Positions 24,462 through 58,273 of a stretch of DNA of 64,000 nt are shown piece after piece (the first letter of the stretch is position 1; each line of letters opens with the position of its first letter). The DNA comes from Macrostomum hystrix (taxonomy: Eukaryota; Animalia; Platyhelminthes): NCBI GenBank assembly GCA_950097015.1, contig CATNEN010000039.1, positions 9,424,001 to 9,488,000 of the forward strand, written 5' to 3'. The position numbers and the translations under genes were made by a program. The notes under the pieces were generated by a model that saw only the letters and a list, made by a program, of their open reading frames with translations, was not told where the DNA came from and searched no databases.

Positions 24462-24557
24462 GAATTGGAATCGGATGCCCCTATTTCGGAGATCTCCGAA
24501 ATCGATTTCCTTGTGTATTACAAGTTTTATTTTATAGTGCAATACTTACATGCCCCT

Positions 24558-26022
24558 TGTTGTACTTGGGATTTCCTGTGTTGTACTGGGATTTCCTGTG
24601 TTGTACTGGGATTTCCTGTGTTGTACTGGGATTTCCTGTGTTTTACCTGGGATTTCCTGTGTTGTACTGGGATTTCCTGTGTTTTACTTGGGATTTCCAG
24701 TGTTGTACTGGGATTTCCTGTGTTGTACTGGGATTTCCTGTGTTGTACTGGGATTTCCTGTGTTGTACAGGGGTTTCCTGTGTTTTACTTGGGATTTCCA
24801 GTGTTGTACTGTGATTTCCTGTGATGTACTGGGATTTCCTGTGTTGTACTGGGATTTCCTGTGTTGTACTGGGATTTCCTGTGTTGTACTGGGATTTCCT
24901 GTGTTGTACTGGGATTTCCAGTGTTGTACTGGGATTTCCTGTGTTGTACTGGGATTTCCTGTGTTTTAGCTGGGATTTCCTGTGTTGTACTGGGATTTCC
25001 TGTGTTTTACTTGGGATTTCCAGTGTTGTACTGTGATTTCCTGTGTTGTACTGGGATTTCCTGTGTTGTACTGGGATTTCCTGTGTTGTACTGGGATTTC
25101 CTGTGTTGTACTGGGATTTCCTGTGTTTTAGCTGGGATTTCCTGTGTTGTACTGGGATTTCCAGTGTTGTACTGGGATTTCCTGTGTTGTACTGGGATTT
25201 CCAGTGTTGTACTGGAATTTCCTGTGTTGTACTGGGATTTCCTGTGTTTTAGCTGGGATTTCCTGTGTTGTACTGGGATTTCCTGTGTTTTACTTGGGAT
25301 TTCCAGTGTTGTACTGTGATTTCCTGTGTTGTACTGGGATTTCCTGTGTTGTACTGGGATTTCCAGTGTTGTACTGGGATTTCCTGTGTTGTACTGGGAT
25401 TTCCTGTGTTTTAGCTGGGATTTCCTGTGTTGTACTGGGATTTCCAGTGTTGTACTGGGATTTCCTGTGTTGTATTGGGATTTCCTGTGTTTTACCTGGG
25501 ATTTCCTGTGTTGTACTGGGATTTCCTCTGTTTTACCTGGGATTTCCTGTGTTTTACTTGGGATTTCCTGTGTTGTACTGGGATTTCCTCTGTTTTACCT
25601 GGGATTTCCTGTGTTGTACTGGGATTTCCTGTGTTTTACTTGGGATTTCCAGTGTTGTACTGGGATTTCCAGTGTTGTACTGTGATTTCCTGTGTTGTAC
25701 TGTGATTTCCTGTGTTGTACTGGGAATTCCAGTGTTGTACCGGGATATCCTGTGTTGTACTGGGATTTCCTGTGTTTTACTTGGGATTTCCAGTGTTGTA
25801 CTGTGATTTCCTGTGTTGTACCGGGATATCCTGTGTTGTACTGGGATTTCCTGTGTTTTACTTGGGATTTCCAGTGCTGTACTGGGATTTCCTGTGTTTT
25901 ACTTGGGATTTCCAGTGTTGTACTGGGATTTCCTGTGTTGTACTGGGATTTCCTGTGTTGTACTGGGATTTCCTGTGTTGTACTGGGATTTCCTGTGTTT
26001 TAGCTGGGATTTCCTGTGTTGT
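24558..26022. repeat. 20/21-bp minisatellite (TGTTGTACTGGGATTTCCTG)n
   Basis: About 70 units with variant units ttttacttggg and ttttagctggg. Confidence 0.97.
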
Positions 26023-29851: not shown

Positions 29852-31356
29852 ATGACAAGGTATTTGTTGAGATTATGGCCAGCAGCTGTTCTCATTGTGC
29901 TTTTGAAGTCGGGCGCCTCAGCTGCGCCGGCTGCCATCGAAGAAGATGGCCGCCAGAGACCTGACTCGGGAGCTAATTACCTGCATCCTGAGGCCTGCGG
30001 GCTAGACGAGTTTGTCAACGCCATAGGAGAGTGCATCAGCTGCTCCTGGTGCTACAACATCGAAAGATCGGGATCGCCTAGCCAGATTGCTCAGCGAATC
30101 TTGCACCGGGACTCCATCTGCAGGTGTGCCTAGCGTGTATGACCTATAAGCATTTCCCTGGCTAACTCAGTCAATATCGGATGATAATGATGTTCGAGTA
30201 CATTTACGTAACTTACTAACTTTATGAGTGTATGCTACTACTACAATAGGTCAGTGGCAGAGTGGTTAACGCCGTTGACTCTCGCACCAAGGTCCCTGAG
30301 CTCGATTCCGCGGCGAGGCCGCATTCATTTGGGGCGCAGCCGCGGAGAGAAGGCTTGCGGGGCTTGCCGTGCAATTTACACCTTTGAGGGCCAACCTCCA
30401 AGGCACAGTGAGTAGTGTACACTGCCTGACGATGAGAAAGTTAGGGCAGATGTGTGAGCGTTTGCCTTTGTGAGTGTGTGCTCAGGAGTCAGCGAGATTA
30501 GCAGAATTGCCTCCTCGCTGGCTGCGGGTCACCTGTCATTAAATAATGTGCCATTGCCCACAGTGGTAGTGGTGAGGGCGTCGGACTCACGACTTGAAGG
30601 TCGGGGGTTCGATTCCCGACTCCTTTGTGTCCTTTAGCAAGACACTTAACTCTGCATTGCTTCAGTTCACCCAGCTGTTAAATGGGTACCAGCATTAGCT
30701 GGGATAATTGAAGGTGGGTGTGGCGTCCCCCCAGTCCATGGACTGAACAGCCGTACGCAGCCTTCAGATGCGCCGCGCAATAGCTGCGGCTGTGCTGTCG
30801 GCTGCACATCTGGCCCAATTGGGGCAGGTGTAATCAATTATTATTATTATTATTATTAATTAGCGCATGCTTAAGCAACTATCACAAAAAAGTGCTGAGG
30901 CAGAATCCTCCATGTCTCTAATCTTACAGGCGCCTCGCTCGAAGCTGCAGTCATCCTGAGCGTGGAAGCACGTCAGCTGCTTCGCCAAAGGCCAGCACCT
31001 CGACTCAGACTTCGTCAGATGCGAAATCGACAAGAGTTCCAGAAAAATTGCATGAAGCTCTTGACAAAGTGACTTCTGCATTAACGGTAGAAGTCGAGAG
31101 CAGCACCGACGGTATCCACACGGCTTCCAGTGCGTCCGTACCCGTCTGGGCATGGTGTGTCGGGGCTGTCAGCATTTTGGTGCTTATAATGGCAGCGATT
31201 GCAGGTTTTACTGCTCGCCTGGTCCGACGGAAGCGAGCGGCCAAATCGATTAGCAAGACCGAGGAGGACGAGGACGCTCACATGATGGCTTCGGCTTCGG
31301 TCATCTCAGTCGATGCTGCTTGCAAGGCGATGAAAGTGAGAGACAGAGCTCACTAA
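29852..31356 (+). CDS. TNF-receptor-like type I membrane protein 1 (single CRD, ~232 aa, 2 exons)
   Basis: Exons 29852-30123 and 30930-31356 (phase 2). Signal peptide, CGLDEFVNAIGECISCSWC...ICRRLARSC, S/T stalk, TM (WAWCVGAVSILVLIMAAIAGF), basic stop-transfer RRKR. The Cys pattern resembles BCMA/TACI/Grindelwald CRDs. Confidence 0.7.
30249..30560 (+). mobile_element. SINE family A, full length, in the TNFR-like 1 intron
   Basis: tRNA head gtcagtggcagagtggttaacg...ctcgattcc; at least 8 related copies in the window. Confidence 0.9.
30562..30858 (+). mobile_element. SINE family B (CORE-SINE-like), full length, (TTA)n tail, abutting SINE-A
   Basis: tRNA head, then tgtgtcctttagcaagacacttaactctgcattgcttcagttcacccagctgttaaatggg, which resembles the MIR CORE domain. 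Confidence 0.85.
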
Positions 31357-32344: not shown

Positions 32345-32830
32345 ATTACGTGCTCGTTTTCTGCCACAGAAGCAATTTCTGTGTCTGCTTTCGTGCCTAA
32401 GGGGGTGGTGTTAAACTTGCAAGAACGTAAAATGCAGAATATAAAAATAGATATGACTAATTTAATTGTGCATACAGGTGGTGCGAATGAATAACTATTT
32501 TTACTAACTGTACGGTATTTGACGTCTTAATTCTAATCTTAGACTTGCGAATTTTAGTAAATTGGAATACAGCATTGGTACAGTTCATTATACGTCAATG
32601 CTGAATTGCTATTTTTCGATCGGGTGTACTTGAATGAATCACATTTCTGTGTCGTGGGTCACACGTTTTAACATTTACACGGCATTTCCACCAAGCACGC
32701 CCTGATTATATATGGCAAAAGGCTGATCGGTTCATCGCTAATTTTGCGGGAGCACTTAGGTAAAAGAAAACTGTATAGGCGTCGATCGCGAATTCATTAG
32801 ATAACTCATGAAACCATTCCCGTGGCACAC

Positions 32831-33586
32831 ATGGTCATCAGATCCAACGTAAGACCAAGAAGCATGGCCATTGATATCATGCTGAGTCCTATTGACTACC
32901 TAACCATCTTTCTGACTGTCGCGACTGCTGTTGCTGTCGCCTGTCAGCCGGACGAGTTTGCCGACTCGCTGGGCTTCTGCCAGAGCTGCGAATGGTGCCG
33001 ACCTCGGCCAGGCCACCAGCAGGCGGCCTCGCACGCTGCCAGTCTGCAGGCCCTGATGCACCGGCGGCTCATCTGCGACCAGCACGGCAGAGCTTGCTTC
33101 GCCGGGACCAGCGCCCAGCAGAACCAAGACCTGCCGACATCCGGAATAATTCAAGAGACAGCGCCGCCTGTCCTCACTACGGGACCACATCAGGTGGAGG
33201 GAAGTCCCGCGCAATCGAAATCCTGGACGCCGGAACCTCGAGTTCCAACTGCCGTGGCCGGTTCCGGAAGCATGACTCTAGCACTTATGATTGCCTGCAG
33301 CGTTGCAGTTTTTATCCTGGTTGCTATCGTTGCTGTTGTCTTCTCTCTGCTGCGGAGACGAACTTCGAATAACCGCGGCCCGGATGCTTCTAAGGAGTCA
33401 GGCGGCGCAGCAGCAGCCGAACCGCAGCGATTTTGGTCAGCTGCGCATGATGCAGGGCTTCGAGGATCTCAGATTTCCATCCTGAGGACTGCAGAGGCCA
33501 TTAGCGAGGCCCAGACCAGCCTTCAACGGTCCGTTGAAGTCGAGGCTGAGGCGGGCGAGAGATTGCTGACCGGTTGCTGTGTCTGA
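32831..33586 (+). CDS. TNF-receptor-like type I membrane protein 2 (single CRD, intronless)
   Basis: Signal peptide (LTIFLTVATAVAVA), CQPDEFADSLGFCQSCEWC...LICDQHGRAC, P/T stalk, TM (LALMIACSVAVFILVAIVAVVFSLL), RRR. Same Cys spacing as gene 1. The start could be ATG 32831, 32864 or 32879. Confidence 0.75.
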   Translation: MVIRSNVRPRSMAIDIMLSPIDYLTIFLTVATAVAVACQPDEFADSLGFCQSCEWCRPRPGHQQAASHAASLQALMHRRLICDQHGRACFAGTSAQQNQDLPTSGIIQETAPPVLTTGPHQVEGSPAQSKSWTPEPRVPTAVAGSGSMTLALMIACSVAVFILVAIVAVVFSLLRRRTSNNRGPDASKESGGAAAAEPQRFWSAAHDAGLRGSQISILRTAEAISEAQTSLQRSVEVEAEAGERLLTGCCV

Positions 33587-34400: not shown

Positions 34401-34649
34401 CCAGTAAATCATAACGAATTATTGTACAAATTATAGAGAAAATAAAAAAAAGCAAACAGTATACTGCTCAGGTAAAAATGAAGGCTTTTAGTTTAGTGAA
34501 AACCTGACTTGTGACTTCTTAGGTAAGCTAACATTCGTTTGAGGCGCAGCCGCAGGCAGTAGGCTGTAACCCATTATTATAATCCAAGAGCACACCCTCA
34601 CACGAATACTGAACCTTATGTGTACACACCTGTGCGTATTCTAAGGTAC

Positions 34650-34787
34650 TGAGAAAGTCAGGGTGTGCACTGCACACTCGCACTGTGCCTTGAGGGTTGG
34701 CCCACAATTTTATCTCCGCGGGTGCGTGTTAAATAATGCGGCCTCGCCGCGGATTCGAGCCAAGGACCTTGATTCGAAAGACGGACG
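34650..34787 (-). mobile_element. SINE family A fragment directly after the IAP-A stop codon
   Basis: aaggtccttggctcgaatccgcggcgaggccgc on the minus strand. Confidence 0.7.
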
Positions 34788-36812
34788 CTACACGAACTTT
34801 ACAGGCGCCTCCGCACGAACTCCTTTCCTGCAAATCGGACAGGTCTGCAAACTCACAGAACAGCGACTGCAGCAGCACAGGTGTCCGCAGTCCAGTAAGA
34901 GCACATTGATCTGCCGGTCCATGCACACTTTGCAGGTGCGCCAATCTGTTTCTGGCGACTCCTGTGGCTCACTACTGCAAACTGAACCTTGAAGCCTCAG
35001 TAGGTAGTTTTCTCGAAAGCTTTCCACATCCTCTGAGCGCCACGTCATCGTATCACGCTGGACAACCACGGCAGTCAGCAGCACCTCAGACGTCGCGAAG
35101 TCGTCGCCCGTGGTCATGAGTCGCAGCTCAATGGCGACGCGCACCTCCGCTGTGGAGAAGCCGAGCTGCACCACATTTTGTGCCGCCGGAGTGTCAGTCC
35201 GAGCGCGGAACTCTCGAGATTCCACGCGATATCGGATGCCCAGATTCGACGATAGACGAGCTCTGTGCAATGGCTGCTGTGGAGCCGACTGCGGATGCGG
35301 GCTCGAGCTTGAGAACTCCACGAAGCGAGCAATAAACTCTGCACCTCCGAACGCTCGAGCGCTTCTCACGAAAGAGGCGCCTCGCTCGCTCAGCAGGTGG
35401 CCGCACCTCGGTGACCACACTGCATGGGCTGTCCAGGCGTTGCCGAGCAGCTGAATTCCTGTCGCTGGAAGCCGAAGGTCACACCAGAAGCAGACCAGAT
35501 TCTGGATCGTCTCGGATTGGTCCGAGAAGAACCCAGCTGACGCAACTTGATCTGCCGGCTCGCCAAGCTCCACGCCCTCGAGTGTTTCGAGCCTGTCTCT
35601 CTGGCCGATGAAGTTCGGATGCTCTATCGGCAGTTGAGCCGCCACCCGCTCGAGCATTTCGAGTCCTTGGACTGCGCGGGACTCCATGACAGATCGCAAC
35701 GTCGATGCCCGTGGCAGTGACAGCGATGACGAAGATACCAACAGCTCCGAGGCGCTCGCTTGTCGTCTCTGTCGCCCCGACTGGTCCGACATAGCCAACG
35801 ATCGCAACTCTTGCTCCATCGAGTGCTCGGAGGCCGATGCTGAGGCCTGTGCTGTCGATTCTTCCGCCTCGCTGCACTGGGTCGAATGTTGAGCACGATC
35901 AGCTTCTTTATCGTCCATCGTCTCATTGCCAACGTCCATCCGGAGCACGAATGGGCAGGTTGAGAACTGGATGGCATGAGCCTGCATCACGGACACTCCG
36001 TCACTCACATTCCAGCTCAGCTTGCCTTGGCAGAATGCGCAGCGAACTTGTCCATCGGCAGTCAGGAATAGCCCGGCGGATGCCATCGACCTGGCCAACT
36101 CGACGGTCATCGAAGTGCCGAAGCTGCGAATCCTGGCCGCCTGTGACCTCATCTCCGCGACTGCACCAGCTCCGTCCCTGAAGCTCAGCTGCTGAGGAAC
36201 TCGACTGTCTCTCCGAGCTCCAATGTAGTAGCGGAGGGTCTTGCACAGCGCTGTCTGATCAGTAAAGGGTTTTACTGCCTGCTTTGCAGAATTTTGTATC
36301 TCGGAATAGAAAAACTGTATTGCTCGAGACAGCATCGGGTAGAAAGTTAAACTCATACCAGATTCTATTACTCGAACTTTAATATTGTCAATCATATCTT
36401 TCATTATTGTTATTACATTATTCATCTGTTTCAACATATGTTGACACTTGTTGAATGACTCAAGTAAAAGTTGTTGTAGCTGTCGCGCAAAGTAGTTGAG
36501 AAGGTCTTCAATTTGAGTAGGGCTGGTGTAGAAAATTTTATTGCTTTCTATCGGGCTCATTTGCACCTTGTGAGCACTGAATTCCAGCGGCGTGTTCATG
36601 CCAGGAGTCGTATTAGTCTTCAACGAGTCTGCAAGGCACGGATTGACGAATTGAATAATTGATTGTACCTTCCACTTGCACTGTTTCTGAGACTGCGACT
36701 TAGACTTTTGACTGGTTTTGTTTTTTGCCAACAATCTTTCGGGCTTTTCGCTCTCACTTATCGGTGCCTCATTTTCTACTAACAGTAAGCACTGGTGCAC
36801 ATAGCCGAACAT
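34788..36812 (-). CDS. Inhibitor-of-apoptosis protein A: N-terminal extension, BIR, BIR, UBA, RING (intronless)
   Basis: BIR1 VRCAFC...AHAIQFSTCPFV; BIR2 LVCFWC...AHAVWSPRCGHL; UBA-like VVQLGFS...TGDDFATSEVLL; canonical IAP RING CKVCMDRQINVLLLDCGHLCCCSRC...CPICR. First ATG at 36812 (the ORF track starts at TTG 36827). Confidence 0.9.
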   Translation of the reverse strand: MFGYVHQCLLLVENEAPISESEKPERLLAKNKTSQKSKSQSQKQCKWKVQSIIQFVNPCLADSLKTNTTPGMNTPLEFSAHKVQMSPIESNKIFYTSPTQIEDLLNYFARQLQQLLLESFNKCQHMLKQMNNVITIMKDMIDNIKVRVIESGMSLTFYPMLSRAIQFFYSEIQNSAKQAVKPFTDQTALCKTLRYYIGARRDSRVPQQLSFRDGAGAVAEMRSQAARIRSFGTSMTVELARSMASAGLFLTADGQVRCAFCQGKLSWNVSDGVSVMQAHAIQFSTCPFVLRMDVGNETMDDKEADRAQHSTQCSEAEESTAQASASASEHSMEQELRSLAMSDQSGRQRRQASASELLVSSSSLSLPRASTLRSVMESRAVQGLEMLERVAAQLPIEHPNFIGQRDRLETLEGVELGEPADQVASAGFFSDQSETIQNLVCFWCDLRLPATGIQLLGNAWTAHAVWSPRCGHLLSERGASFVRSARAFGGAEFIARFVEFSSSSPHPQSAPQQPLHRARLSSNLGIRYRVESREFRARTDTPAAQNVVQLGFSTAEVRVAIELRLMTTGDDFATSEVLLTAVVVQRDTMTWRSEDVESFRENYLLRLQGSVCSSEPQESPETDWRTCKVCMDRQINVLLLDCGHLCCCSRCSVSLQTCPICRKGVRAEAPVKFV

Positions 36813-39220
36813 ATTTAGATGGCTCAAGTGTTTAACAATATAGTTGTCGAATTATTCAACCATTCTCGTTGGGGTGTCGGGGGCAAGAGCCAACAATAAT
36901 GGCGTACCTTTTCAGCGCACAAGTCTCATGATGTAACCATATCGGCCATCATTGTTGACTATTTCGGACTTATTAAATTGTTCATTGATTCATTTTTAAC
37001 TAATATGGATTCGCCATAGGGTTTATAGAGAGCAATGCTAGTCTTACTTGCCACCTGCAGGGTCCCGACGATGCTGAGTCGGTCGGTTCATCGTAGACGG
37101 AGGCAGATTAAGATTCAGATGGTGGACTTTCGCGAAAAATTGGTCATTCTGGTTGGGAGCTATCGTGCAGTAGGCAGTGAGCATTTGAAATACCCCATGG
37201 TCTTTTCCCAAAGGTAAAATAGAGTGCTTTTTTCTATCTTTGAGTTGTTAAGAATGGACGATACGAATTTCCGACCTGCTAAAAAAGGAGGTAAAAACTT
37301 GATTGAAAAAATAATCTCACCTTTTTGGTGATCAGTCATTATGCATAAAACAATAAACAGAGTGGCAACTTTCATTTGCGCGCATTAGGCAGACATAGGG
37401 ATGTAGATTCTAGTAAGTTGTTTCTTTCGTTTCCTTTCGTTGCCTGTAACTTAAAAAAACGCTGCAGTAAAAGGAACTATGAAAGGTATACGCTAAAAAT
37501 ACGAAAATTTCCATGCCGCTCCGAGCGTAGAAGCTAGTTTTGTTCAGCTAAGCAAATTAAAAATGCTGTAAATGTAATGCAATGCAAAGGAATATAATTG
37601 GTTTGTCGAATACCAGCTTACAAAAATACAAGAATACATACTCATGGCCAATTGAGTGCAGCCAATGCGAGCCAGTTCTGCTAGTACCGTGTAGCAATGT
37701 CTTGCAATCTGTATGTACAATGGCCCTAGTATAAGCTTGTATATTACGAAAATCTCGCTGAGTACTAAATTTGCAAGTACATAAAATCAATTGAACTGCG
37801 CTTAAAATATTGTAAAGAAAATGTGCAAAATTTTAAAGCAAAAATGATAACATTTCATCACCACTGATGAGCGCAAGGCGTTAGCAGGCAACCCAATATA
37901 AAAAACCTTCAATCACAATTGATAGCCGTACAGTTTCTGGTACTTAAGAAAACCGCAAAAAATTCCCTGCGTTCTATGATGTAGAGAAAACTATAATTCC
38001 AGAGCGACATCACAGTACTTCCGAAACAAGAATCAAGTAATGACATTTCAAAATCAAACAGCGCTGTGCAAGACCCTCCGCTACTACATTGGAGCTCGGA
38101 GAGACAGTCGAGTTCCTCAGCAGCTGAGCTTCAGGGACGGAGCTGGTGCAGTCGCGAAGATGAGGTCACAGGCGGCCAGGATTCGCAGCTTCGGCACTTC
38201 GATGACCGTCGAGTTGGCCAGGTCGATGGCATCCGCCGGGCTATTCCTGACTGCCGATGGACAAGTTCGCTGCGCATTCTGCCAAGGCAAGCTGAGCTGG
38301 AATGTGAGTGACGGAGTGTCCGTGATGCAGGCTCATGCCATCCAGTTCTCAACCTGCCCATTCGTGCTCCGGATGGACGTTGGCAATGAGACGATGGACG
38401 ATAAAGAAGCTGATCGTGCTCAACATTCGACCCAGTGCAGCGAGGCGGAAGAATCGACAGCACAGGCCTCAGCATCGGCCTCCGAGCACTCGATGGAGCA
38501 AGAGTTGCGATCGTTGGCTATGTCGGACCAGTCGGGGCGACAGAGACGACAAGCGAGCGCCTCGGAGCTGTTGGTATCTTCGTCATCGCTGTCACTGCCA
38601 CGGGCATCGACGTTGCGATCTGTCATGGAGTCCCGCGCAGTCCAAGGACTCGAAATGCTCGAGCGGGTGGCGGCTCAACTGCCGATAGAGCATCCGAACT
38701 TCATCGGCCAGAGAGACAGGCTCGAAACACTCGAGGGCGTGGAGCTTGGCGAGCCGGCAGATCAAGTTGCGTCAGCTGGGTTCTTCTCGGACCAATCCGA
38801 GACGATCCAGAATCTGGTCTGCTTCTGGTGTGACCTTCGGCTTCCAGCGACAGGAATTCAGCTGCTCGGCAACGCCTGGACAGCCCATGCAGTGTGGTCA
38901 CCGAGGTGCGGCCACCTGCTGAGCGAGCGAGGCGCCTCTTTCGTGAGAAGCGCTCGAGCGTTCGGAGGTGCAGAGTTTATTGCTCGCTTCGTGGAGTTCT
39001 CGAGCTCGAGCCCGCATCCGCAGTCGGCTCCACAGCAGCCATTGCACAGAGCTCGTCTATCGTCGAATCTGGGCATCCGATATCGCGTGGAATCTCGAGA
39101 GTTCCGCGCTCGGACTGACACTCCGGCGGCACAAAATGTGGTGCAGCTCGGCTTCTCCACAGCGGAGGTGCGCGTCGCCATTGAGCTGCGACTCATGACC
39201 ACGGGCGACGACTTCGCGAC
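35092..39220. repeat. Long inverted repeat: arms 35092-36254 and 38058-39220 (1163 bp), spacer 1803 bp
   Basis: Paired coordinates sum to 74312. Only two differences were seen by eye: E/K at AVA(E/K)M and a synonymous TCA/TCG. Confidence 0.95.
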
Positions 39221-39551
39221 TTCTGGACTGCTTCTAGAAGCAGTGAATCGCCAGAGAGCTAAAATTTTAGATTCTAATATTGACTTGGATGAGTGCGGAG
39301 AAGATGGATTGAGACGCTTGATGCTTCCGAGTGGGTTTTTCCAGAACGTTTCGCTGCTGCGCTGCATTGTCTGCTTCTCGTCGATGCGCACTGCGCAGCT
39401 CGCACGGCCTGCTACTGCCGTGCCGAACATTTTTCTGCCGTGCGGGCATCAGCCCCGAGTGTGCTCAACCTGCGCCAGAAAGTGCAACAAGTGCCCTCAG
39501 TGTGGGACTGAGGTTTCTGGTTGTCTGTCCGTCAACTACTTGGACGAGTAG
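38040..39551 (+). CDS. Inhibitor-of-apoptosis protein B: BIR, BIR, UBA, divergent RING (503 aa, intronless)
   Basis: Same BIR-BIR-UBA block as IAP-A; RING CIVCFSSMRTAQLARPATAVPNIFLPCGHQPRVCSTCARKCNKCPQCG. Confidence 0.9.
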   Translation: MTFQNQTALCKTLRYYIGARRDSRVPQQLSFRDGAGAVAKMRSQAARIRSFGTSMTVELARSMASAGLFLTADGQVRCAFCQGKLSWNVSDGVSVMQAHAIQFSTCPFVLRMDVGNETMDDKEADRAQHSTQCSEAEESTAQASASASEHSMEQELRSLAMSDQSGRQRRQASASELLVSSSSLSLPRASTLRSVMESRAVQGLEMLERVAAQLPIEHPNFIGQRDRLETLEGVELGEPADQVASAGFFSDQSETIQNLVCFWCDLRLPATGIQLLGNAWTAHAVWSPRCGHLLSERGASFVRSARAFGGAEFIARFVEFSSSSPHPQSAPQQPLHRARLSSNLGIRYRVESREFRARTDTPAAQNVVQLGFSTAEVRVAIELRLMTTGDDFATSGLLLEAVNRQRAKILDSNIDLDECGEDGLRRLMLPSGFFQNVSLLRCIVCFSSMRTAQLARPATAVPNIFLPCGHQPRVCSTCARKCNKCPQCGTEVSGCLSVNYLDE

Positions 39552-42500
39552 TTGTTCGTTGCCTAGCGCACGTTCAGTTCGTTTCGGTTTCGGTTCGGTT
39601 CGGTTTCTAAATTTTCTGAATTTTCTATTCTGGGTGCGAAGTTGTTTTTCTATCCTAGTTTAATTTGCGCAAATTTTTTTCTAGCTTTTTTTATATTTTG
39701 CCACATTTTCGCAGTTTGTTTTGCATTTACTTTTCAAAAAACTATTTAAGTTCAAAATTCGAAAAATTCAAATTTTTTTTCTTGCTAAGCAACGAGTCTT
39801 AGCTTTGGTAATTTGTTTTGACATGCATTTTTGGCCACAAAAATAAATAGCTAACGATCAATAGTAAATATAGCGCTCCATAGGTAAAAGTAGGTACGCA
39901 AATTTTTCATGACCACGAGAAACTAAGGTTGATCGCGCTTCCTCTCTCTGTGCAAATTTCAGAAAGTCCAAACTGTGATCTTCCTTGAGTATATATATAA
40001 TATACATGATATCATATGTAGAGTAACATTATATACATTTTTAAAGTGTACTTAATTTGGATCAACTGATTTTGAGATCCGTAATTTTATTTACTAGGTG
40101 CAAAATAGTTGTGGAAGTATTTTTTCTTGGGCGTTTATGTACTCGTAATATGTAATTTGTATAGTTTCACTTCAATGCATGTGTAAATAAATCTGATTTG
40201 TATGCAAGCGGTAAAATGTGTGTAATAAATATATCTCACTTTTTCTTATGCAACAATTTCCAATGTATTTTATTTCCAATATGAGCTAACGTTTGAGAAT
40301 GATCCTCTGTTTTTCCAGTGCTTCTGACTTTCTTAAGTGTGATATAGCCTAAACTAAGCTATATTTAGCATGTGAGTTGTACACTATTGATGTACACTTG
40401 TACACGCACGCACTTACGCAGATGATCGTACTCTCGTATATTCTGTAGACTAATTTTAGCCGTGACGATTGGTTGGTTCCATGTTGGCATTCTAACTTTA
40501 GCAGTAAGCGCGCCTTCTAGGCCCGAACTGGCAAACATTGGAACACTATACTAAGTAGAGAATGGTATATGTTTTCAATTCTGCTTTGGCACGTTTGGTA
40601 CTTTGGTACTTTGGCACTTTGGTACGTTTTGGTGAGTAAACGTGCATTAAATTTAGTGACTTATGATTATTATCTTAGGAACATGCACATGAAAAATTTA
40701 ACAGGATCAAACTCTGTACTAGATTTATAGCAATTCGTTCGAACATTATTTTTCCTCTATGCAGTATGCACTTCAGCTATGATATATACTACTTTAAGGG
40801 AAATGTATGGAAACAAATCGCTAAATCTATTTTAGAGGCTCGTAGGTGTATTCACACACTGCGTGGCTCGTAGAATAACCAATTTAAGCCTAAAACGTTA
40901 TCTAATTCGTTATAAAAATCGATATCATAGAAATGCCAATGCGAGATTAAAGTGTATGCATGAGTTTATAGGAAAAATATGTCGTCTAAAATATTGCTTG
41001 CAATTAGTGATGAAAAAAAGCCATCTTTTGATAAAGTTTCGCTCTAACGACCCTTGTACGTCGGGATCGATTCTTCCTCCCGCGATACACTGGAACAATT
41101 TCGTCGACTGCGGAGAGAACCATAGGGCTGAACTCAAAGCTCATGCCACCGTTTACGCTGGGTGCAGCACCACCTAAAAGCAATTGTGTCACATGTGGGA
41201 GGGGTTTTCAATCGATCCTGCTGTAGGTAAGCTGAGACACACTATTCTGCGCTTATCATTGTATTGTTCGTTGCTAGAACGACTCGTGCTCACACAAATC
41301 AAGGACCCACTATAGTATAGCCATTCATTAGCTAGTCTAGTATAGAAGTACTTTATACAAAAAGAGTCCACCATCCACAGTATAGCGTTAACTTTAGCTG
41401 TATGTACATGCCTTATGGATGCGCCCATATCGCTCGGAAGCTGGCTGCTTCCAGTCAGCTATCGCGGTTTTGCCTCTCAGCTCGTGTCCCTTCAACGAGG
41501 GGTTTAGCGAAGACAAGTCGTGATAGGCTTTGCCTTAAATAATTACTAGTCAAATTGATTTAATCGAATCGCATCCAAATTTACAAGCACAATACGCGTG
41601 TACATTCATCCAAACTGTGTATAATCATCCCAAGGACCATTAGGAATAGACTCTTTTAAGTCTAGAGTCTACTCGTAGTAGTCGGTAGTCGGTCCAATTA
41701 TGGCTGGATTCATCATAAACAAATTATTTTTTATTTTTTAATAAGAAAGACGATGCAAATGTATTTTTAGTAAAAGCGATGTTACTATAAAGCTGCAGCT
41801 GAGACAGACAGACAAATTATCAAGTTCCGAGTTCCTATTTTTAGAAATGAAATAATGCTCACCGGTGTGATTATCCATTACACACACTTTGATGCCTAGG
41901 AACAACGTAAATTTATCAGAAATTTATGAAAAATCTGTTGTGCAAATACGCATTTTATTAAATGTATGAAAACAGTTTAAACCAGTTGTTTAATTTCTTG
42001 CGTAACCTTGAATCATTTCTTTTCGTTTCATACGTTACGTTTGAGATACCGCGGAGAGTACATGAAAATGTTGTTTACGTTCCTTCGCCGTTAAACTTAA
42101 AATGAAAAATCTCGTCAGTGTAGTACATAGCCAAATAGCTTAGGTTATAGGTTATAGTGCCTACTTATGCAGAGGAGCATGATTTTGAATTATTTATCCC
42201 CGCTTAATGCTTGTTATTTTAGCTAGCCTACCAATGCTAAGGCCTAGCATTGTGACCAATGTCCCATCAGAAATAAGTAGGTAGCTAAAGTAAGTTAGAA
42301 AGTGGTATGGTTTAAGGATAGGACTAGACTAGGCTCTTAGGACCTACTCTCTTCGTCTTAAAAAGCAGTGTCTTAATGAGTGTATGACTCTTAACTACTG
42401 GCCTATTCACATATGTCTTAAAAATGTACTTGTTTTTATGCAAAGATGCTAGGCCTTGCTTATGCTTTACCTACTTATACGTTATACTTAGGCCTATAGT

Positions 42501-44768: not shown

Positions 44769-47700
44769 ATGAATACATTCGCAAGCATTGATGTAACGGC
44801 CTGGCGCGGGGCTCGCGTGCTGTTTTATCACGAGCCATTTGGAGCCTATCTGCCCGGCCAGTTAGTTTCATTCACGCCTGGCAACCAGCGGGCCATTGTT
44901 GAAGTGGAGGAACGCCTGGCTAGCAGTCTAGGCCTGTCTGTCACCGACTATCGCTCGGTGAAGCTGAAACTCAAGAGCGCCAGCCTAGCTGCGGGCCCTG
45001 GCGACGGCGCTGATCGTCTAACTAGCCGACAGTTTCGCGTTCCAATCGAGGACGTGGTTAGTGACGGCGCGCCGCAGCTCACTCAGCTAGCCGAAGGTCA
45101 GCTCGCCTGCGCCCAGCTGCCGCAGGAACAGGAGCCGTACGTTGGCCTCTATCGCCCAGTCATCATTGAAGGCCTGTCGCCAGCTGCCCTGCCCATGGTT
45201 AGTGTTAAACTCGGCGACCAGATACTTTCGGTGCATCGATCCCAGCTCAGACTGCTCAGGCCACCGTGGCAGGACGAGCTAGACGCTTTGGCCGCTGCAG
45301 CCACTGCCGCAGCTGTGGCCGAGTCGACAGCCACCGCGACAACAGCCTCGGCTTCTGACACCGCTGACGATTTTTCGTCTCCGCCGCCAGGCTTGGATGA
45401 CGACGATGAGTCTGGTTAGTGAGGCCACATTCATTTTGGATGCAGCCGCGGAGGGAAGGCTTGGGGATTGTCGTGCAATTTAAGCACTTAAGGGCCAACC
45501 TCCAAAGCACAGTGAGAGTGTACACTGCCTGACGATGCCTGACGAAAGTCAGGGCAGATGTACACACCTACGTGAGTGTGTTCTCAGGAGTCAACGAAAT
45601 GGGCAGAATTGCCTCCTCGCTGGCTGCGGGTCTATTGTCAACAAATGATGTGTCATTGCCCGCAGCCCTCATGCAAATAATAAAGTAAATTTTATTATTA
45701 TTGTGCCTTGCTAATTGGCCCTTCTGGGGCGTAAATTGAACGACCTCTCCACAGTGGATTCGAGCTCGAGACCTTATTGCAAAATTGCCCTGCAAAATAA
45801 ATTCATAAAATACGTTCCTTAAAAAATACATTAGCTGGGACAGATACTAGGGTGGGAGTTTCGGCCTCGCCAGTCCACGGACTGAACAGCTGTACACAGC
45901 CATCGCTGCGACTGTGCCACTGGCTTTAAATTCGGCTTGGTCCAAATAGGTTCTCACAATCAAACAGCGGCATGAGAAAAATCCAACAGACTTGAAGAAG
46001 CTTCCATGAGATTAGATCGATGCCTTAACAAGCACACCTGCGCCTCCGGTTATCTTCAGGTGCTTGTCTGCAGTTATAATATTTTGCGGTTCTTTCAGTT
46101 TGCAAATCTTCTGTTTTCTTTTGGCTTTGAATCAAACGAAAAAAAAAATAATTAAAGGCACCAAATTGTATTTTTTTCTCTTGAAAAATAGGCTTTTATG
46201 ATTTCCCACAAACGCTTTGCTAGTTTATCACCATGCCTGCTCACTGCCTGCTCACAACCCTAGTATATGTTGCCTAGAAGAGATTAGTAAAAAAACTGGT
46301 GAGTTACGCTAGATTGCTTTTCAGTCGTTAAGATAGAAATTTATCCATTTTGTAGATGTTTTCGATTCGCTCTCTCTCATTCTATAGGTAGCTGTCCTCA
46401 AAGGTGCTGTTCGGGATTAAAGCAAATCAAATTTTATCGCAGGCAACCAAAATCCTAAAATCAATTACGCTCGTAAAAGACCAGGAAATGAAAAAATCTA
46501 TTGCGTTCCCCAAAATCATTAAAGTAATTAAAACACACGGATTCAATAAAGCGGTCGATATCCTCAAAATTACAAAGGCAGCCTATATTATAGAAATTCT
46601 AAGAAGCAATAAATTATCCTATATCAATCAATCGATGATCCCATAACAAGTTATCAATTATCCCATGACAAGCAATCAAATTATCCCAGCCAGTGACAAG
46701 CAATTAAATTATCCCAGCCAGTGACAAGCAATCAAATTATCCCAGCCAGTGACAAGCAATTAAATTATCCCAGCCAGTGACTAACAATCAAATTATCCCA
46801 GCCAGTGACAAACAATCAAATTATCCCAGCCAGTGACAAGCAATTAAATTATCCCAGCCAGTGACTAGCAATCAAATTATCCCAGCCAGTGACAAACAAT
46901 CAAATTATCCCAGCCAGTGACAAGCAATCAAATTATCCCAGCCAGTGACTAGCAATCAAATTATCCCAGCCAGTGACAAGCAATCAAATTATCCCAGCCA
47001 GTGACAAACAATCAAATTATCCCAGCCAGTGACAAGCAATTAAATTATCCCAGCCAGTGACAAGCAATTAAATTATCCCAGCCAGTGACAAGCAATCAAA
47101 TTATCCCAGCCAGTGACAAGCAATTAAATTATCCCAGCCAGTGACAAGCAATCAAATTATCCCAGCCAGTGACTAGCAATCAAATTATCCCAGCCAGTGA
47201 CAAGCAATCAAATTATCCCAGCCAGTGACAAGCAATCAAATTATCCCAGCCAGTGACAAGCAATTAAATTATCCCAGCCAGTGACAAGCAATCAAATTAT
47301 CCCAGCCAGTGACAAGCAATTAAATTATCCCAGCCAGTGACAAGCAATCAAATTATCCCAGCCAGTGACAAGCAATTAAATTATCCCAGCCAGTGACAAG
47401 CAATTAAATTATCCCAGCCAGTGACAAGCAATCAAATTATCCCAGCCAGTGACAAGCAATTAAATTATCCCAGCCAGTGACTAGCAATCAAATTATCCCA
47501 GCCAGTGACAAGCAATTAAATTATCCCAGCCAGTGACAAGCAATCAAATTATCCCAGCCAGTGACAAGCAATTAAATTATCCCAGCCAGTGACAAGCAAT
47601 TATATTATCTCAGCCAGTGACAAGCAATCTCCCTGTCTTGCCAGACTGCGATCCCCAGCAGGGTTCGAGCCGCGTCACCAAGGGCGCAGTGGTGTGGACT

Positions 47701-48884
47701 CCGGCCGGCGTTAAGAAGAAATTCAACGGCAAGCAGTGGCGCCGACTGTGCAGCGCGGACGGCTGTTCCAAGGAGAGCCAGCGCCGCGGCTTCTGCTCCA
47801 GGCACCTCAGCCAGAAGGGCAAGGCGAACAAGTAAGCGGTGTGTTGGCAGTTGTTCTGTCTGACTGATTTACTTCAGAAAACTCATTCTCATTCGCAGGT
47901 ACCAGCGTCCCCTAGAGCCTTGGGCGGCTGGTCTTACACCAAACTCCTCGAATTCAGCTGCCGCCGCCGCTACGACCGCCAGCACGTCTCCAGCCGCAGC
48001 TCCATTCACCACAGCTGCGCCACCCACGCAGTCTTTTGTCAACTTCATCGCTGCTTCAGTGTCGTCGATTTCAACTGGGCAGCTGCCGCTTATGCAGCAG
48101 CAGCAAGTGATTCTTCCTCCGTCTTGCACCAGTCTGCTTCCGATCCTGGAATCCGAACTCAGGCACGAGCCAAACCAGCAGCAGCAGATGCCTCCAACCC
48201 TGTCTATGGAGACTTTGGCAGCCGCAGCAGCTGTAGCCAGCGTTGACAATCAGCAGCCACTTCCCCATTTCGCTGCTCCTGAACCACCCAGTCTGGCGAA
48301 GATTTCTGAGGGCTCAACAGTTCCCGCAGATCCTCCCGCCGCTACAGAAGCTGCGGCGGATACAATTGAAGATGAAGACGACGTCTTCCAGCAGCCGGAG
48401 AAGCCGCGCGACTCTCACACCGGTGGCAAGTCTCAGCAACAGTCTGAGCACATTCGCAGGCCTATGAATGCTTTCATCCTGTTCAGCAAGCGCAACCGAG
48501 CCCGCGTACAGGAGGAAAACCCCGGCCTTGACAACCGGGCAGTGAGCAAAATCCTTGGCGAGCTGTGGTACAACCTGTCCAAAACAGATCGTGAGCAGTA
48601 CAACAATTTAGCTAGCCAGGTGAAATCTGAGCACTTCCGGCAGAATCCCAACTTCCGCTGGTCCTCGTCTGCTAAGGAGCGACGCCGATCCGAGTCCGCC
48701 TCGGCCGCTGTTTCAATTCAAGCCTCAGCAGGCGGCGGCGTCGGTGGTGCTAGCAACGGCAGCGATAACAATCTGCGCCTACTGGCCGACGCTGCCGTGG
48801 CTCAGGCTCACCAAAGTGCCTCATCGTCTAGAGGCACTCCGCCGCATCAGCCGCCGCCAAAGTTTCGACGAATGTCCGAGCACC

Positions 48885-48927
<43 letters not shown>

Positions 48928-50766
48928 CAGCTTCCAGCTCTACTCAAGCGGCTGCGGCGCCATCTTGGTTCCCACCACCGTGCAGCCCAGTCTTCTCAGC
49001 ATCACTGATCAGCATCATCATCAGCAGCATCAGCAGCCATCGCCTCTTGAGTCGCCGTCGGCGTTCACGCACTTTGTACTTCGCCGCAACCCGGCGCAGC
49101 CAGTGCAGCATCATCACAGCGACACTTCAACTGTGTCCTCATCAGGCTGCAATGACGAACAACTGGTATCTCGCAGCGGCGGCGGCGGTGGCGGCAGCAG
49201 CAGCAGCAGCACGCACAACAGCGGCGGCAACAACAGCAATAAGCGTCGCGAGAGACCTGCCCCGTTGCAGCTCTCACCGACCATTATTAGCGGCGTTAGC
49301 AACAGTGTCTCCGCCAATAACAATTCCATCTGTGCCCGCAACAATAATGAAACTTCCTCAGACTCGCAGCCCACCGAGGAGGCTAAAAGTACACCCGACG
49401 GAATCTTCAAGCGTCAATTAGATGTGACTACAAAATCAGTGCTCACTGAGGTGGACTTCGGTCGCAAATTCAGCCACCTGCCCGAGTTTCAACCTGGCGT
49501 TGCTCCAGTCTCCGCTTTGAGTCCGCGCAATTTTTTTCAACAGCACTGCCGCAGCGCTCCGCCAACTTCAGTTGACCCAACGTCCTTTTATGCCGCTGCC
49601 GCCGCTGCTGCCGCCGCAGTCGCCGCTGGTCCGGAGCGGCACTTCTTCTTTGGCCAGAATTTTTCACCAGAAGCGGCCGAAGAGTTGGCTAGATCCACAC
49701 TCCAGATGGCTGGCGACGACTTCATCATGGCCACACCAGGTGGCAGCGGTGCCAGCGGCTGCGGTCCTGGCACCCCGCGCAGCCCCGGCGGCAGCGCTAG
49801 GCGGGTTCTGGAGCAACGGCGCAGCCTGGTAACCATGCTGTTTCAGCAATGTGATAACTTCTTTCCAACCAGTGAGTCATCCTGTGCGCACATCCTGTGT
49901 GTGGATTTCTAATCACTCCCATCAAAATCCCCTAATCTTATCCCCTCATTTTATCCGCCCAGACGAACAGTTGGAGAACTTCCAACGCGAGCATTCGGAT
50001 GTGTTTCCTAGCAAGGCCATGCTTACGCTTAAAGTGCGCGAGGTCCGTCAAAAACTCAGGCAGACGGCCAGCCAGGCCTTGCCGAGCAGCCCTGGGACTG
50101 TCGGTGCTGCCAGGGATCATCGGGTCAGTCCTCTGCCTGATGCTCCCATCCTGATTGTATGTTCCCACTGCCTAATTTTCCCATCCTGATTGTCTGTTCC
50201 CACTGCCTGATGCTCCCATCCTGATTGTCTGTTCCCACTGCCTGAACTCATCCTGAGTGTCTTTTCCCACTGCCTAATTTTCCCATCCTGATTGTCTGTT
50301 CCCACTGCCTGATGCTCCCATCCTGATTGTCTGTTCCCACTGCCTGAACTCATCCTGAGTGTCTTTTCCCACTGCCTGAACTCATCCTGAGTGTCTGTTC
50401 CCACTGCCTGAACTCATCCTGAGTGTCTGTTCCCACTGCCTGAACTCATCCTGAGTGTCTGTTCCCACTGCCTGAACTCATCCTGAGTGTCTTTTCCCAC
50501 TGCCTGAACTCATCCTGAGTGTCTTTTCCCACTGCCTGAACTCATCCTGAGTGTCTTTTCCCACTGCCTGAACTCATCCTGAGTGTCTTTTCCCACTGCC
50601 TGAACTCATCCTGAGTGTCTTTTCCCACTGCCTGAACTCATCCTGAGTGTCTTTTCCCACTGCCTGAACTCATCCTGAGTGTCTGTTCTGACAGAACTGC
50701 ATTATTTTTGCACTATTTCAGACTGCGGACTCTACTTCTGCTGCTACGAAGAACACCTTAGATTGA
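44769..50766 (+). CDS. cic: Capicua transcriptional repressor, long-isoform type (~1003 aa, 5 exons)
   Basis: Exons 44769-45414, 47645-47831, 47899-49871, 49963-50123, 50722-50766 are phase-consistent. N1 motif [30 protein letters not shown]; HMG box [14 protein letters not shown]...[14 protein letters not shown]; [14 protein letters not shown]; C1 domain LEQRRSLV...FFPT...[10 protein letters not shown]. The last exon is less certain. Confidence 0.95.
45419..45670 (+). mobile_element. SINE family A copy (5'-truncated) immediately after the cic exon-1 donor
   Basis: gaggccacattcattttggatgcagccgcgg...gcagaattgcctcctcgctggctgcgggtc. Confidence 0.85.
46650..47630. repeat. 28-bp minisatellite in cic intron 1
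   Basis: gacaagcaat(c/t)aaattatcccagccagt x ~34. Confidence 0.97.
50130..50690. repeat. 32/33-bp minisatellite filling cic intron 4
   Basis: cccactgcctgaactcatcctgagtgtct(g/t)tt units. Confidence 0.95.
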
Positions 50767-54452: not shown

Positions 54453-55069
54453 GTCTGTATTAACTTATATCTAATCTAAATCTCCAAATATCGATCACAG
54501 TGCGCAATTGTTTTGTCTTTTTTAAAGTATAATAAACTGTTTATATATTGTCTTTCTCATCTCTACCTCCATTTATTCAGCTTAAGCGAAACTCGCTCTA
54601 ACGTGAAATCACGCTAACCATCAGTCTAAGGCGCGCCTAATTATTATCAACAGATTTGCTAAATTCGCTTTCTAGACTCAAACGCTATCGTTTGTTGTCA
54701 AGTTTTGCAGATTATAGACAGGTGTTTAATGTAGAAAATTGGCTTTGCCATATCCTGAGCAGATTTTTATTCTTGTGTTTTTTTCTCTGTCTTTAATTAG
54801 GTATTCATAAATATTCAATAATTCTTGTGCTCTTCTGCTGCGTGTAAACTTTATCCATTTCCGAGGCCGTTGTCGTGTTTTGCCAGAATCTTTCGCTTTG
54901 AAAAACATGTTATAATCTCTCGTCTGTCAGCTCGTGCTCAGGTCATTGTTCCGCTCCGTGCTCCGCTCCCAGGAATCGTTTTTACCAGCTTCATTCAAAC
55001 TGACCTGCTTCAAGCTTCTTCTCATGTTCTTCTCATGCTTTTCCCATAGTTTCACACTCTTCCTCAATC

Positions 55070-56435
55070 TTCTCACACTCTTCCCCTATCATCTTACACT
55101 CTTCCCCTATCATCTTACACTCTTCCCCTATCATCTCACACTCTTCCCCTATCATCTCACACTCTTCCCCTATCATCTTACACTCTTCCCCTATCATCTC
55201 ACACTCTTCCCCTATCATCTCACACTATTCCCCTATTATCTCACACTCTTCCCCTATCATCTTACACTCTTCCCCTATCATCTCACACTCTTCCCCTATC
55301 ATCTCACACTCTTCCCCTATCATCTTACACTCTTCCCCTATCATCTCACACTCTTCCCCTATCATCTCACACTATTCCCCTATTATCTCACACTCTTCCC
55401 CTATCATCTCACACTCTTCCCCTATCATCTTACACTCTTCCCCTATCATCTCACACTCTTCCCCTATCATCTCACACTCTTCCCCTATCATCTCACACTC
55501 TTCCCCTATCATCTTACACTCTTCCCCTATCATCTCACACTCTTCCCCTATCATCTTACACTCTTCCCCTATCATCTCACACTCTTCCCCTATCATCTCA
55601 CACTATTCCCCTATTATCTCACACTCTTCCCCTATCATCTCACACTCTTCCCCTATCATCTTACACTCTTCCCCTATCATCTCACACTCTTCCCCTATCA
55701 TCTCACACTCTTCCCCTATCATCTTACACTCTTCCCCTATCATCTCACACTCTTCCCCTATCATCTCACACTATTCCCCTATTATCTCACACTCTTCCCC
55801 TATCATCTTACACTCTTCCCCTATCATCTCACACTCTTCCCCTATCATCTCACACTCTTCCCCTATCATCTTACACTCTTCCCCTATCATCTTACACTCT
55901 TCCCCTATCATCTTACACTCTTCCCCTATCATCTCACACTCTTCCCCTATCATCTCACACTCTTCCCCTATCATCTTACACTCTTCCCCTATCATCTCAC
56001 ACTCTTCCCCTATCATCTCACACTCTTCCCCTATCATCTTACACTCTTCCCCTATCATCTCACACTATTCCCCTATTATCTCACACTCTTCCCCTATCAT
56101 CTTACACTCTTCCCCTATCATCTCACACTCTTCCCCTATCATCTTACACTCTTCCCACCTTCTCACACTCTTCCTATATTCTCACACTCTTCTCATCATC
56201 TCACACTCTTCTCATCATCTCACACTCTTCCTATATCATCTCACACTCTTCCCCTATCATCTCACACTCTTCCCCTATCATCTTACACTCTTCCCACCTT
56301 CTCACACTCTTCCTATATTCTCACACTCTTCTCATCATCTCACACTCTTCTCATCATCTCACACTCTTCTCATCATCTCACACTCTTCTCATCATCTTAC
56401 ACTCTTCCCACCTTCTCACACTCTTCCTATATTCT
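55070..56435. repeat. 21-bp pyrimidine-rich minisatellite
   Basis: cacactcttcccctatcatct x ~55, degenerating at the 3' end. Confidence 0.97.
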
Positions 56436-57296
56436 CATGTTCTCATTTTTCCCATTTTCTGATGATCCTCACATCTTCTCAAGCCATCCGACTCAGTAGG
56501 TGTCAATTATGAAGCAAAGTTACCCCCCACCCTGGCGAGCCCTCTTAGACTTTTGCACCGTGTATCTCGCACTGTCTTTCTCACCGCTTGTTGACGCGAA
56601 GTCGCTTTCTTAAAGATATTTTTCTCACTTGTGTTTGTTTTACTTCTTGCATGCTTTTTTTTTGTTTTCGCCATTTTAAGTGAGCTAAATTTCGTTAAAA
56701 TATATTTTTAGATTTCTATTGATCGATATTTGAATGTATTAGTAATTATAGTGTGGCTAATTGTGTCAACTATTTATTGATCTGTGCGCGAAGTTTGTCA
56801 TTGGCTTTCATTGTGATTGTTGATTGTGTACATCAAAATAATTCTGCTATAGAATGAATCCAGTTACTTTATAGATGCGCTTTGGGACAAAACTAACTAA
56901 AATAAACGATTTTATTTTCTGTGTGCCATGAGAAATTGTTCTGTTTAAAAAAATAAATTTATTTTTCTGTCCCGACTTTCGTTCACTTTTTTTTCTTATG
57001 CTGATTCAATGACCGTTTCTTCTGATTTCATTTCTGAGATTGTTATTAGACTTCACATCGCTTTCAAAGGGATTAACTAAGATGAGATGAAAAAGGCTAT
57101 TTGATGATTTGAACTGGAGTAAGAGAGCCGAGATTTCAGTTTCAGGTGGAACTTTGATATCACATCGTTTGTGATCGCGGCTTCATTTTCAAAAGTCCGA
57201 ATAAACACGACCAAGAGAGGTCGCTAATGACGCAAATTGTGTATTTTAATCAAAGAGATTTGACACATTTTAGATAAAAACATCCCATTGCCTATT

Positions 57297-58068: not shown

Positions 58069-58273
58069 TATATTTACCCCATTCGCAGTATACAAAGCAA
58101 ATCACCTGACTAGTACGCAATCATTGGTCTCTAATTTTGAAACAGTTTCTGCGTCATCGCTCACTATTAGCAGGCTAATGTCTTGAAGAATTTACATCAA
58201 TGACGCACCTGAAAAAAATTACGCAAAACATACTACTCGAACTATACTGAACAGTAGTATTTAAGGTGTGTAG

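Follow-up and report, generated by a model that had tools for sequence, protein, structure and literature searches.

Introduction

Inverted gene pairs that undergo concerted evolution by interlocus gene conversion include Hsp70Aa/Ab and Amy in Drosophila and hsp-16 in C. elegans. The palindromes of the human Y are sex-chromosome structures in which both arm-to-arm gene conversion and spacer inversion take place. Programmed DNA inversion is known from the bacterial invertons Hin and Fim, the R64 shufflon (which swaps the C-termini of PilV), FLP on the yeast 2-micron plasmid, and the inverted-repeat isomers of plastids; these systems utilise either a dedicated site-specific recombinase with short defined sites or very high organelle recombination, and both orientations are readily seen. 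In primate X palindromes, crossover between the arms inverts the spacer and is frequent: about half of these palindromes differ in spacer orientation between species, and 18% of chromosomes carry one human spacer in inverted form (PMC8327919). The locus described here comprises two divergent IAP-type genes of the flatworm Macrostomum hystrix, designated A and B, which share a near-identical core in inverted orientation. It lies within a 64-kb stretch of contig CATNEN010000039.1 (positions 9,424,001 to 9,488,000), and this whole stretch is referred to below as the window.

The favoured explanation, considered quite probable in its entirety, is that of a head-to-head gene pair homogenised by gene conversion. 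Two paralogous IAP-type genes would lie head to head, with B originating as a 5′-truncated inverted copy of the conserved gene A type. The tail of B would then have diverged strongly into an orphan RING, and, in the recent past, non-allelic (interlocus) gene conversion between the two inverted genes would have made the 1,168-bp core (BIR1-BIR2-UBA-like) uniform. The likeliest direction is the overwriting of B by A-type sequence, either in one recent event or in the latest of repeated events. The predicted result is a pair of proteins alike in their substrate-binding core and distinct in their N-termini and in their E3 (RING) ends.

The inverted repeat and its support in sequencing reads

A repeat search returned 35051-36276 and 38036-39261 as the sole long inverted repeat in the 64-kb window. 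When the arms are compared base by base in the register p + q = 74312, the near-perfect part of this repeat is 1,168 nt long (35092-36259 versus 38053-39220) and contains three mismatches. The locus is accordingly divided into two arms and the spacer between them:

35092..36259, minus strand: Arm A, the near-identical core of gene A, covering open reading frame (ORF) residues 190-579 (pre-BIR linker, BIR1, BIR2, and most of the UBA-like segment)
36260..38052, no strand: Spacer of 1,793 nt, containing the N-terminal coding part of A, the A intron, A exon 1, the promoter gap, the 5′ untranslated region (UTR) of B, and the first four B codons
38053..39220, plus strand: Arm B, the near-identical core of gene B, matched with 0 differences by 1,163-nt contigs of runs X1 and X2

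The arms differ at positions 35310, 36155, and 36255 of arm A, corresponding to 39002, 38157, and 38057 of arm B. One of them alters the protein (E/K), the other two being synonymous TCA/TCG (Ser) and CAG/CAA (Gln) changes; between the arm-specific differences, 844 nt are perfectly identical. Past either end of the tract, identity drops to background within a few bases. The two divergent ORFs, A (34788-36827, minus strand) and B (38040-39551, plus strand), remain open through both repeat boundaries. An initial annotation of this DNA, made from the sequence alone, had described near-identical arms of 1163 bp with ~2 differences in two divergent IAP ORFs, with abrupt edges of identity and both frames intact across them; the register check and the ORFs bear out this description, with the revised length and count given above. 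No further copies of the arms occur elsewhere in the 220-Mb assembly (220,453,370 bases in 42 contigs), and the two halves of the spacer show neither similarity to each other nor internal symmetry.

Support from outside the assembly comes from sequencing runs examined as k=31 contigs, with read-derived contigs originating from three studies. In run X1, the probable source DNA, contigs 34500-35121, 36225-38087, 38058-39220, and 39191-39900 are separate and end approximately 30 nt inside the four arm/flank junctions, all of which are backed by read-derived contigs. Run X4, from an independent 2020 study, holds one 2,446-nt contig that reproduces 34500-36628 with 0 differences, including the three arm-A-specific letters, its course through arm A being a path in the contig graph and not read-level linkage; run X2 contributes a 1,163-nt contig identical to arm B.

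Near-perfect inverted repeats can be produced by long-read fold-back chimeras, and the repeat might in principle be an assembly artefact, consisting either of a false inverted duplication or of two more divergent copies polished to identity. The collapsed arm contig of X1 (38058-39220) has a depth of 207.6 compared with 74-86 in the single-copy flanks, which is 2.6x and not exactly the 2x expected of two copies. However, the read graph of this same run holds four distinct arm/flank junction contigs, X4 and X2 yield exact copies of arm A (its three specific letters included) and of arm B, respectively, and the flanks carry different, open, and expressed coding tails. An artefact is very unlikely because the arms, the arm-specific letters, and the junctions are all reproduced in contigs outside the assembly. 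The arm depth of 2.6x may reflect G+C coverage bias (G+C is 60% in the arms, 39% in the spacer, and 43%-52% in the tail/3′ UTR stretches); alternatively, it could be due to extra copies in the pooled worms.

Domain composition of the two proteins

Outside the arms, each gene continues into a tail of its own:

34788..35091, minus strand: Tail A, comprising the end of the UBA-like helix, a linker, and a canonical IAP-type RING
39221..39551, plus strand: Tail B, comprising a divergent linker and an atypical RING that keeps all eight zinc ligands and carries an 11-residue insertion in its first loop

The BIR family of Pfam (PF00653) matches both ORFs with expectation values (E) of 3.6e-11 (A) and 1.7e-10 (B), in two stretches in each, and the ligands of the BIR zinc signature CX2C-X16-18-H-X6-C are visible in both BIRs of both ORFs. 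In a comparison with solved structures, A aligns collinearly with cIAP1 (3T6P) in a BIR, a UBA-like stretch, and the RING. The RING of A scores 46.9 bits with PF13920 (cut-off 27) and 45.7 bits with the RING stretch of cIAP1 in 3T6P. The RING of B scores 21.5 bits with PF13920, which is under the cut-off of 27 and borderline for an IAP-type RING; its best Protein Data Bank matches are the RINGs of cIAP1, cIAP2, and XIAP (E 8.5e-8 to 2e-3).

The segment between the BIRs and the RING resembles a UBA domain weakly, with a match to PF21290 (UBA_BIRC2-3) at E 0.079 and 13.5 bits (cut-off 27.2) and a likewise weak collinear match to the cIAP1 UBA of 3T6P (12.4-14.6 bits, independent E 0.25-0.45). 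The outer repeat boundary falls inside this UBA-like segment, directly past the family-conserved GDDFATS motif. Of the BIR-BIR-UBA arms proposed initially, the two BIR stretches are matched in each ORF, and the UBA assignment becomes a weak match to a segment of which the arms hold most, not all. By domain content, A and B are IAP-type genes of the arrangement BIR-BIR-UBA-like-RING, with predicted roles in E3 ligation and in caspase or IBM-motif binding.

Core and tail tell different histories

The closest public protein to gene A is a hypothetical protein of M. lignano (P0001), which carries a homologous N-terminal extension (E 1e-4) and an A-type RING. Judged by this comparison, gene A is the conserved member of the pair and is orthologous over its whole length to the M. 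lignano protein. The M. hystrix genome holds at least nine further IAP paralogues, of which at least seven are clustered on contig C38 and the others are on contigs C33, C7, and C11. A family alignment was made of A, B, P0001, and nine further paralogues of the genome, and identity to A was taken separately in the tail and in the core:

M. lignano P0001 versus A: tail 69%, core 60%
Nine paralogues of the genome versus A: tail 37%-45%, core 32%-37%
B versus A: tail 28%, core 99%

The tail is the better-conserved part in every aligned sequence except B, which combines the most divergent tail of the whole family with the most A-like core. A single duplication date cannot explain a core at 99% together with a tail at 28%, and the identity tract is hence best explained, on the evidence of these alignments, as the homogenisation of diverged paralogues by gene conversion as opposed to a fresh whole-gene duplication. 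Selection at the protein level was considered as the cause of the arm identity and rejected, as two of the three differences are synonymous and synonymous sites are otherwise identical too. No signature of GC-biased conversion was found, G+C at third codon positions being 0.66 in the arms and 0.66-0.72 in the cores of the unconverted paralogues.

Past the outer boundary, the A and B tails are homologous in register: an anchored, ungapped comparison gives 12 identical residues out of 34, a value reached by 0 of 100,000 shuffles. Across the first 34 tail codons, A and B match at position 2 in 18 of 34 cases and at position 3 in 10 of 34, the latter being random. A profile of the family tails scores the B tail above all 2,000 shuffles, and B keeps family-conserved linker residues and the RING spacing; an unanchored profile of the B pre-RING linker is only marginal, being matched by 48 of 2,000 shuffles, and the anchored comparison is the informative one. 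The outer tract end is, on this comparison, a true conversion boundary with old homology continuing past it.

The inner edge differs in character. Weak similarity extends for ~17-25 nt (FTDQ versus FQNQ), after which none is detected in DNA or in translated comparison; the B start codon sits at this edge, and no remnants of the N-terminal extension of A were found upstream of B. Most probably, the duplication that gave rise to a 5′-truncated inverted copy originally broke at this inner edge, which would then not be a conversion boundary set within older homology. The initial annotation had protein similarity fading on just outside the tract, which holds, with statistical significance, on the outer (tail) side and reaches no further than those ~17-25 nt on the inner side. 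Its broader proposal, that old paralogues were homogenised by conversion and did not arise by a fresh duplication, is supported by the core/tail discordance, the in-register tails, and the saturated third positions.

A one-off and recent chimeric duplication would account for the same arms differently: the core of A would have been copied in inverted orientation beside an unrelated sequence or RING gene, in frame by chance, and B would never have been an IAP paralogue. Homology does simply stop on the inner side, and BLASTP finds only a weak match, limited to the RING, when the two tails are compared by themselves (E 0.012). Furthermore, searches of this genome and of public protein sets returned no relative of the B tail apart from one weak match at E 5e-5 among 1.84 billion representative proteins. 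Set against this are the anchored identities past the outer boundary with a codon pattern of old purifying selection, the retained family linker residues and RING spacing, the finding that IAP RINGs are the best solved-structure matches of the B RING, and the ranking of the B tail by the family-tail profile over all shuffles. Chimeric origin is thus considered improbable.

With regard to direction, the ratio of core to tail identity in the comparison of A with P0001 is 0.87, equal to the 0.82-0.86 of the other paralogues. On the strength of this ratio, the shared core is A-type and B was probably the recipient. Homogenisation that has gone on continuously ever since the duplication gives an equally good fit.

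Several points weigh against the conversion of an old paralogue. The age of B rests only on saturated codon positions and a fast-evolving tail, and relatives of the B tail were found neither in this genome nor in a set of 5.8 billion proteins; the public protein searches likewise yielded no B orthologue. Conversion also needs prior homology, and a core as diverged as the tail would hardly permit a first event; homogenisation would therefore have to be continuous since duplication, or a replication-type patch event would be needed. The A-to-B direction is drawn from identity ratios and not from an outgroup locus. The surplus depth of the collapsed arm in X1, described above, belongs here as well.

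Conversion between inverted IAP copies appears to recur in this genome, as indicated by the sequence of a second head-to-head pair on contig C38 (~31,196,088-31,203,516). This pair has a 1,060-nt inverted repeat at 99% identity (L036 1088-2147 and 7457-8516), a 597-nt tail block at 96%, unrelated N-terminal parts, and 5.3 kb between the arms, and it lies among at least seven IAP paralogues clustered within ~140 kb. Inverted duplication with later conversion thus looks like a common route by which gene families evolve in this flatworm.

Gene structure and expression

Runs X2 and X4 were taken as RNA-like: their contig totals are 42-54 million letters, the promoter gap is uncovered, and the intron is covered only at a dispersed repeat. 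Both genes are expressed, A and B each being covered by these RNA-like contigs. The structure of gene A is as follows:

34788..36628, minus strand: Gene A exon 2, coding down to the stop at 34788-34790, with the mRNA running on to ~34444 and the acceptor AG at 36630-36629; an X4 contig has 34500-36628 joined to 37321-37581
36629..37320, minus strand: Gene A intron, 692 nt, GT..AG, phase 1, containing ATG 36812
37321..37607, minus strand: Gene A exon 1 (minimum extent), with a 5′ UTR holding short upstream ORFs; seen in contigs of X2 (to 37607) and X4 (to 37581)
36846..37237, no strand: Dispersed repeat fragment within the gene A intron, unclassified, with at least 40 assembly copies at 66%-85% identity on many contigs

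The splice joint 36628 to 37321 is present in both X2 and X4 and removes 692 nt bounded by GT..AG on the minus strand, and ATG 36812 is therefore not in the mRNA. The exons of gene A were translated and searched separately, with the frame over the intron taken from the codon phase. From the in-frame ATGs at 37375 and 37339, the frame is open as far as the splice donor; the in-frame ATG that follows, 36599, belongs to exon 2. Depending on the start codon, the N-terminal extension before the repeat is ~113-141 aa. The N-terminus of ~186 aa given by the initial annotation was a partly intronic ORF beginning at the ATG that is spliced out, and it is replaced by this shorter extension.

Upstream ATGs in the gene A 5′ UTR are located at 37514, 37396, 37385, and 37346. 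In each of the four runs, contigs over 37034-37214 of the intronic repeat reach very high depth, with a core at ~37136-37210 of up to ~150x single-copy. Rfam returned no match in this repeat and no RNA families in the spacer.

Gene B and the interval that separates it from gene A have the following features:

37608..37772, no strand: Gap between the observed 5′ ends, at most 165 bp, with CCAAT pentamers at 37648 and 37662, TATAAG at 37730, and TATATT at 37740
37773..38039, plus strand: Gene B 5′ UTR (minimum extent), with five short upstream ORFs; X2 contig 37773-38087
38040..39551, plus strand: Gene B coding sequence, 503 aa, unspliced here and without an N-terminal extension, with the mRNA continuing past 39900; X2 contigs 37773-38087, 38058-39220, and 39191-39900+

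The start of the gene B transcript is at 37773 or upstream of it, and no splicing is seen through the tail. Since the 5′ ends lie at most 165 bp apart, the gap is probably a shared bidirectional promoter region. The TATA-like hexamers within it are situated ~33 nt upstream of the B contig start; the CCAAT pentamers are present without statistical significance. The five upstream ATGs of gene B open ORFs of 1-8 codons. The short upstream ORFs in both 5′ UTRs hint at translational control or, alternatively, at 5′ ends that are replaced by trans-splicing.

Orientation of the spacer

Crossover of the inverted arms would flip the 1.8-kb spacer, such that the promoter, exon 1, and N-terminus of A drive RING-B and the B promoter drives RING-A. 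The initial annotation proposed such an invertible cassette, and its geometry is formally correct: with both ORFs in frame over both boundaries, a flip leaves four in-frame combinations of N-terminus and RING. The arms also offer the 844 nt of perfect identity between differences, recent conversion would show that they interact, and spacers are known to invert through crossover between the arms of palindromes (PMC8327919). An invertible cassette might take the form of a heritable inversion polymorphism or of a somatic or programmed switch.

The k=31 contigs, which are the only form in which the locus is seen here, are blind to a flip, which would leave no novel junction when the arms are identical, and the bearing of the runs on orientation comes from depth. 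In X2, depths pair as assembled, with 10.7 on the A 5′ part and 9.4 on the A tail, and 16.7 on the B 5′ UTR and 18.9 on the B tail. In X4, it is A that supplies both the abundant 5′ part and the abundant tail, which is compatible with the assembled orientation and no more, as the hole at the B 5′ UTR allows no inference. This run has low-depth contigs on the B tail and 3′ UTR (39369-39900; depth 3-4) and none over 37773-38039, a pattern that, alone among the observations, a minority of flipped templates would also give but that is most simply explained by drop-out at that depth.

Other observations stand against the cassette. The M. lignano orthologue has the same combination of a long N-terminus and an A-type RING. 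No short specific recombination sites are evident, and the window is without a recombinase- or transposase-like ORF: the eight other large window ORFs gave no match to these families, a search that covered ORFs of at least 200 aa and that spliced genes could escape. The assembly was made from pooled worms of a highly inbred line (F ~0.998; PMC10468722), and standing polymorphism in the sequenced line is unlikely on account of this inbreeding.

An invertible cassette is unlikely on balance. A detectable inversion polymorphism has a slender chance, and a programmed switch is very improbable. It is decidedly doubtful that the spacer exists in both orientations in natural populations or somatically, which would give four in-frame IAP combinations and a recombinase-independent counterpart of the shufflon in a eukaryote.

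Surroundings of the locus

Long minisatellite arrays are unusually abundant over 2405-63993, with units of 8-65 nt in dozens of copies each (examples are 3740-5000, 24466-25800, 46526-47700, 54896-56500, and 57132-58190), and several of them create long spurious ORFs. A 203-nt direct repeat occurs in two copies that are 96% identical and 13.7 kb apart (16939-17141 and 30655-30857). Just downstream of the 3′ end of gene A, the ORF 32822-33586 (plus strand) has cysteine-rich spacing and a hydrophobic segment, with no Pfam match at E 0.01. Neighbouring ORFs on the plus strand encode a DUF4819 domain (44769-45419, E 4e-10) and an HMG box (48059-49912, E 1.8e-19), and the minus-strand ORF 58274-58900 has a weak match to a neurotransmitter-gated channel transmembrane region.

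Significance and comparison with known systems

As an instance of partial concerted evolution within a gene pair, the IAP locus is clean and supported by reads; the process is a familiar one, and in this respect the case is ordinary. Particular to this pair is that the binding module alone is shared, with N-termini and ubiquitin-ligase ends that differ. Such a “same reader, different effector” pair could be used to probe what the RING and the N-terminal extension each contribute. The gene models are corrected with regard to the intron, the true first exon, and a compact, putative bidirectional promoter. Were the spacer flip true, it would represent a rare inversion-mediated domain swap in an animal gene, acting on an apoptosis/immune E3 ligase. 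A search of the literature on Macrostomum IAPs found nothing relevant.

Among characterised proteins, the pair resembles cIAP1, cIAP2, and XIAP (BIRC2/3/4) in the BIR zinc site (CX2C...H...C), in a putative UBA-like segment whose weak match is collinear with the UBA of cIAP1, and in a C-terminal IAP-type RING. It differs from them in having two BIRs instead of three and in being without a CARD; in addition, A has a lineage-specific N-terminal extension, and the RING of B is atypical in that its loop carries the 11 inserted residues, its C-terminal end is changed, and it scores under the Pfam cut-off.

With the invertons, the shufflon, and FLP, the locus shares inverted repeats that flank a promoter and/or coding ends and, in principle, alternative proteins from one locus. 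In contrast to those systems, no recombinase was found here among window ORFs of at least 200 aa, no defined sites are evident, and a second orientation was not seen, the locus being viewed through k=31 contigs only. The primate X palindromes are alike in having inverted arms that are >99% identical on either side of a unique spacer; their arms are maintained by conversion, and their spacer is flipped by crossover (PMC8327919). The arms of sex-chromosome palindromes, however, are tens to hundreds of kb long and contain whole genes, and thus a flip spares coding sequence, whereas the arms of the IAP pair are 1.17 kb long and lie inside the genes, and a flip would swap protein ends.

The inverted pairs of Hsp70, Amy, and hsp-16 share with this locus inverted paralogues, near-identical coding sequence including synonymous sites, sharp tract edges, and diverged flanks. 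In the IAP pair, however, the middle of the coding sequence alone is homogenised, the 5′ parts being unrelated and the 3′ RING parts anciently diverged, and the predicted products consequently differ at both ends.

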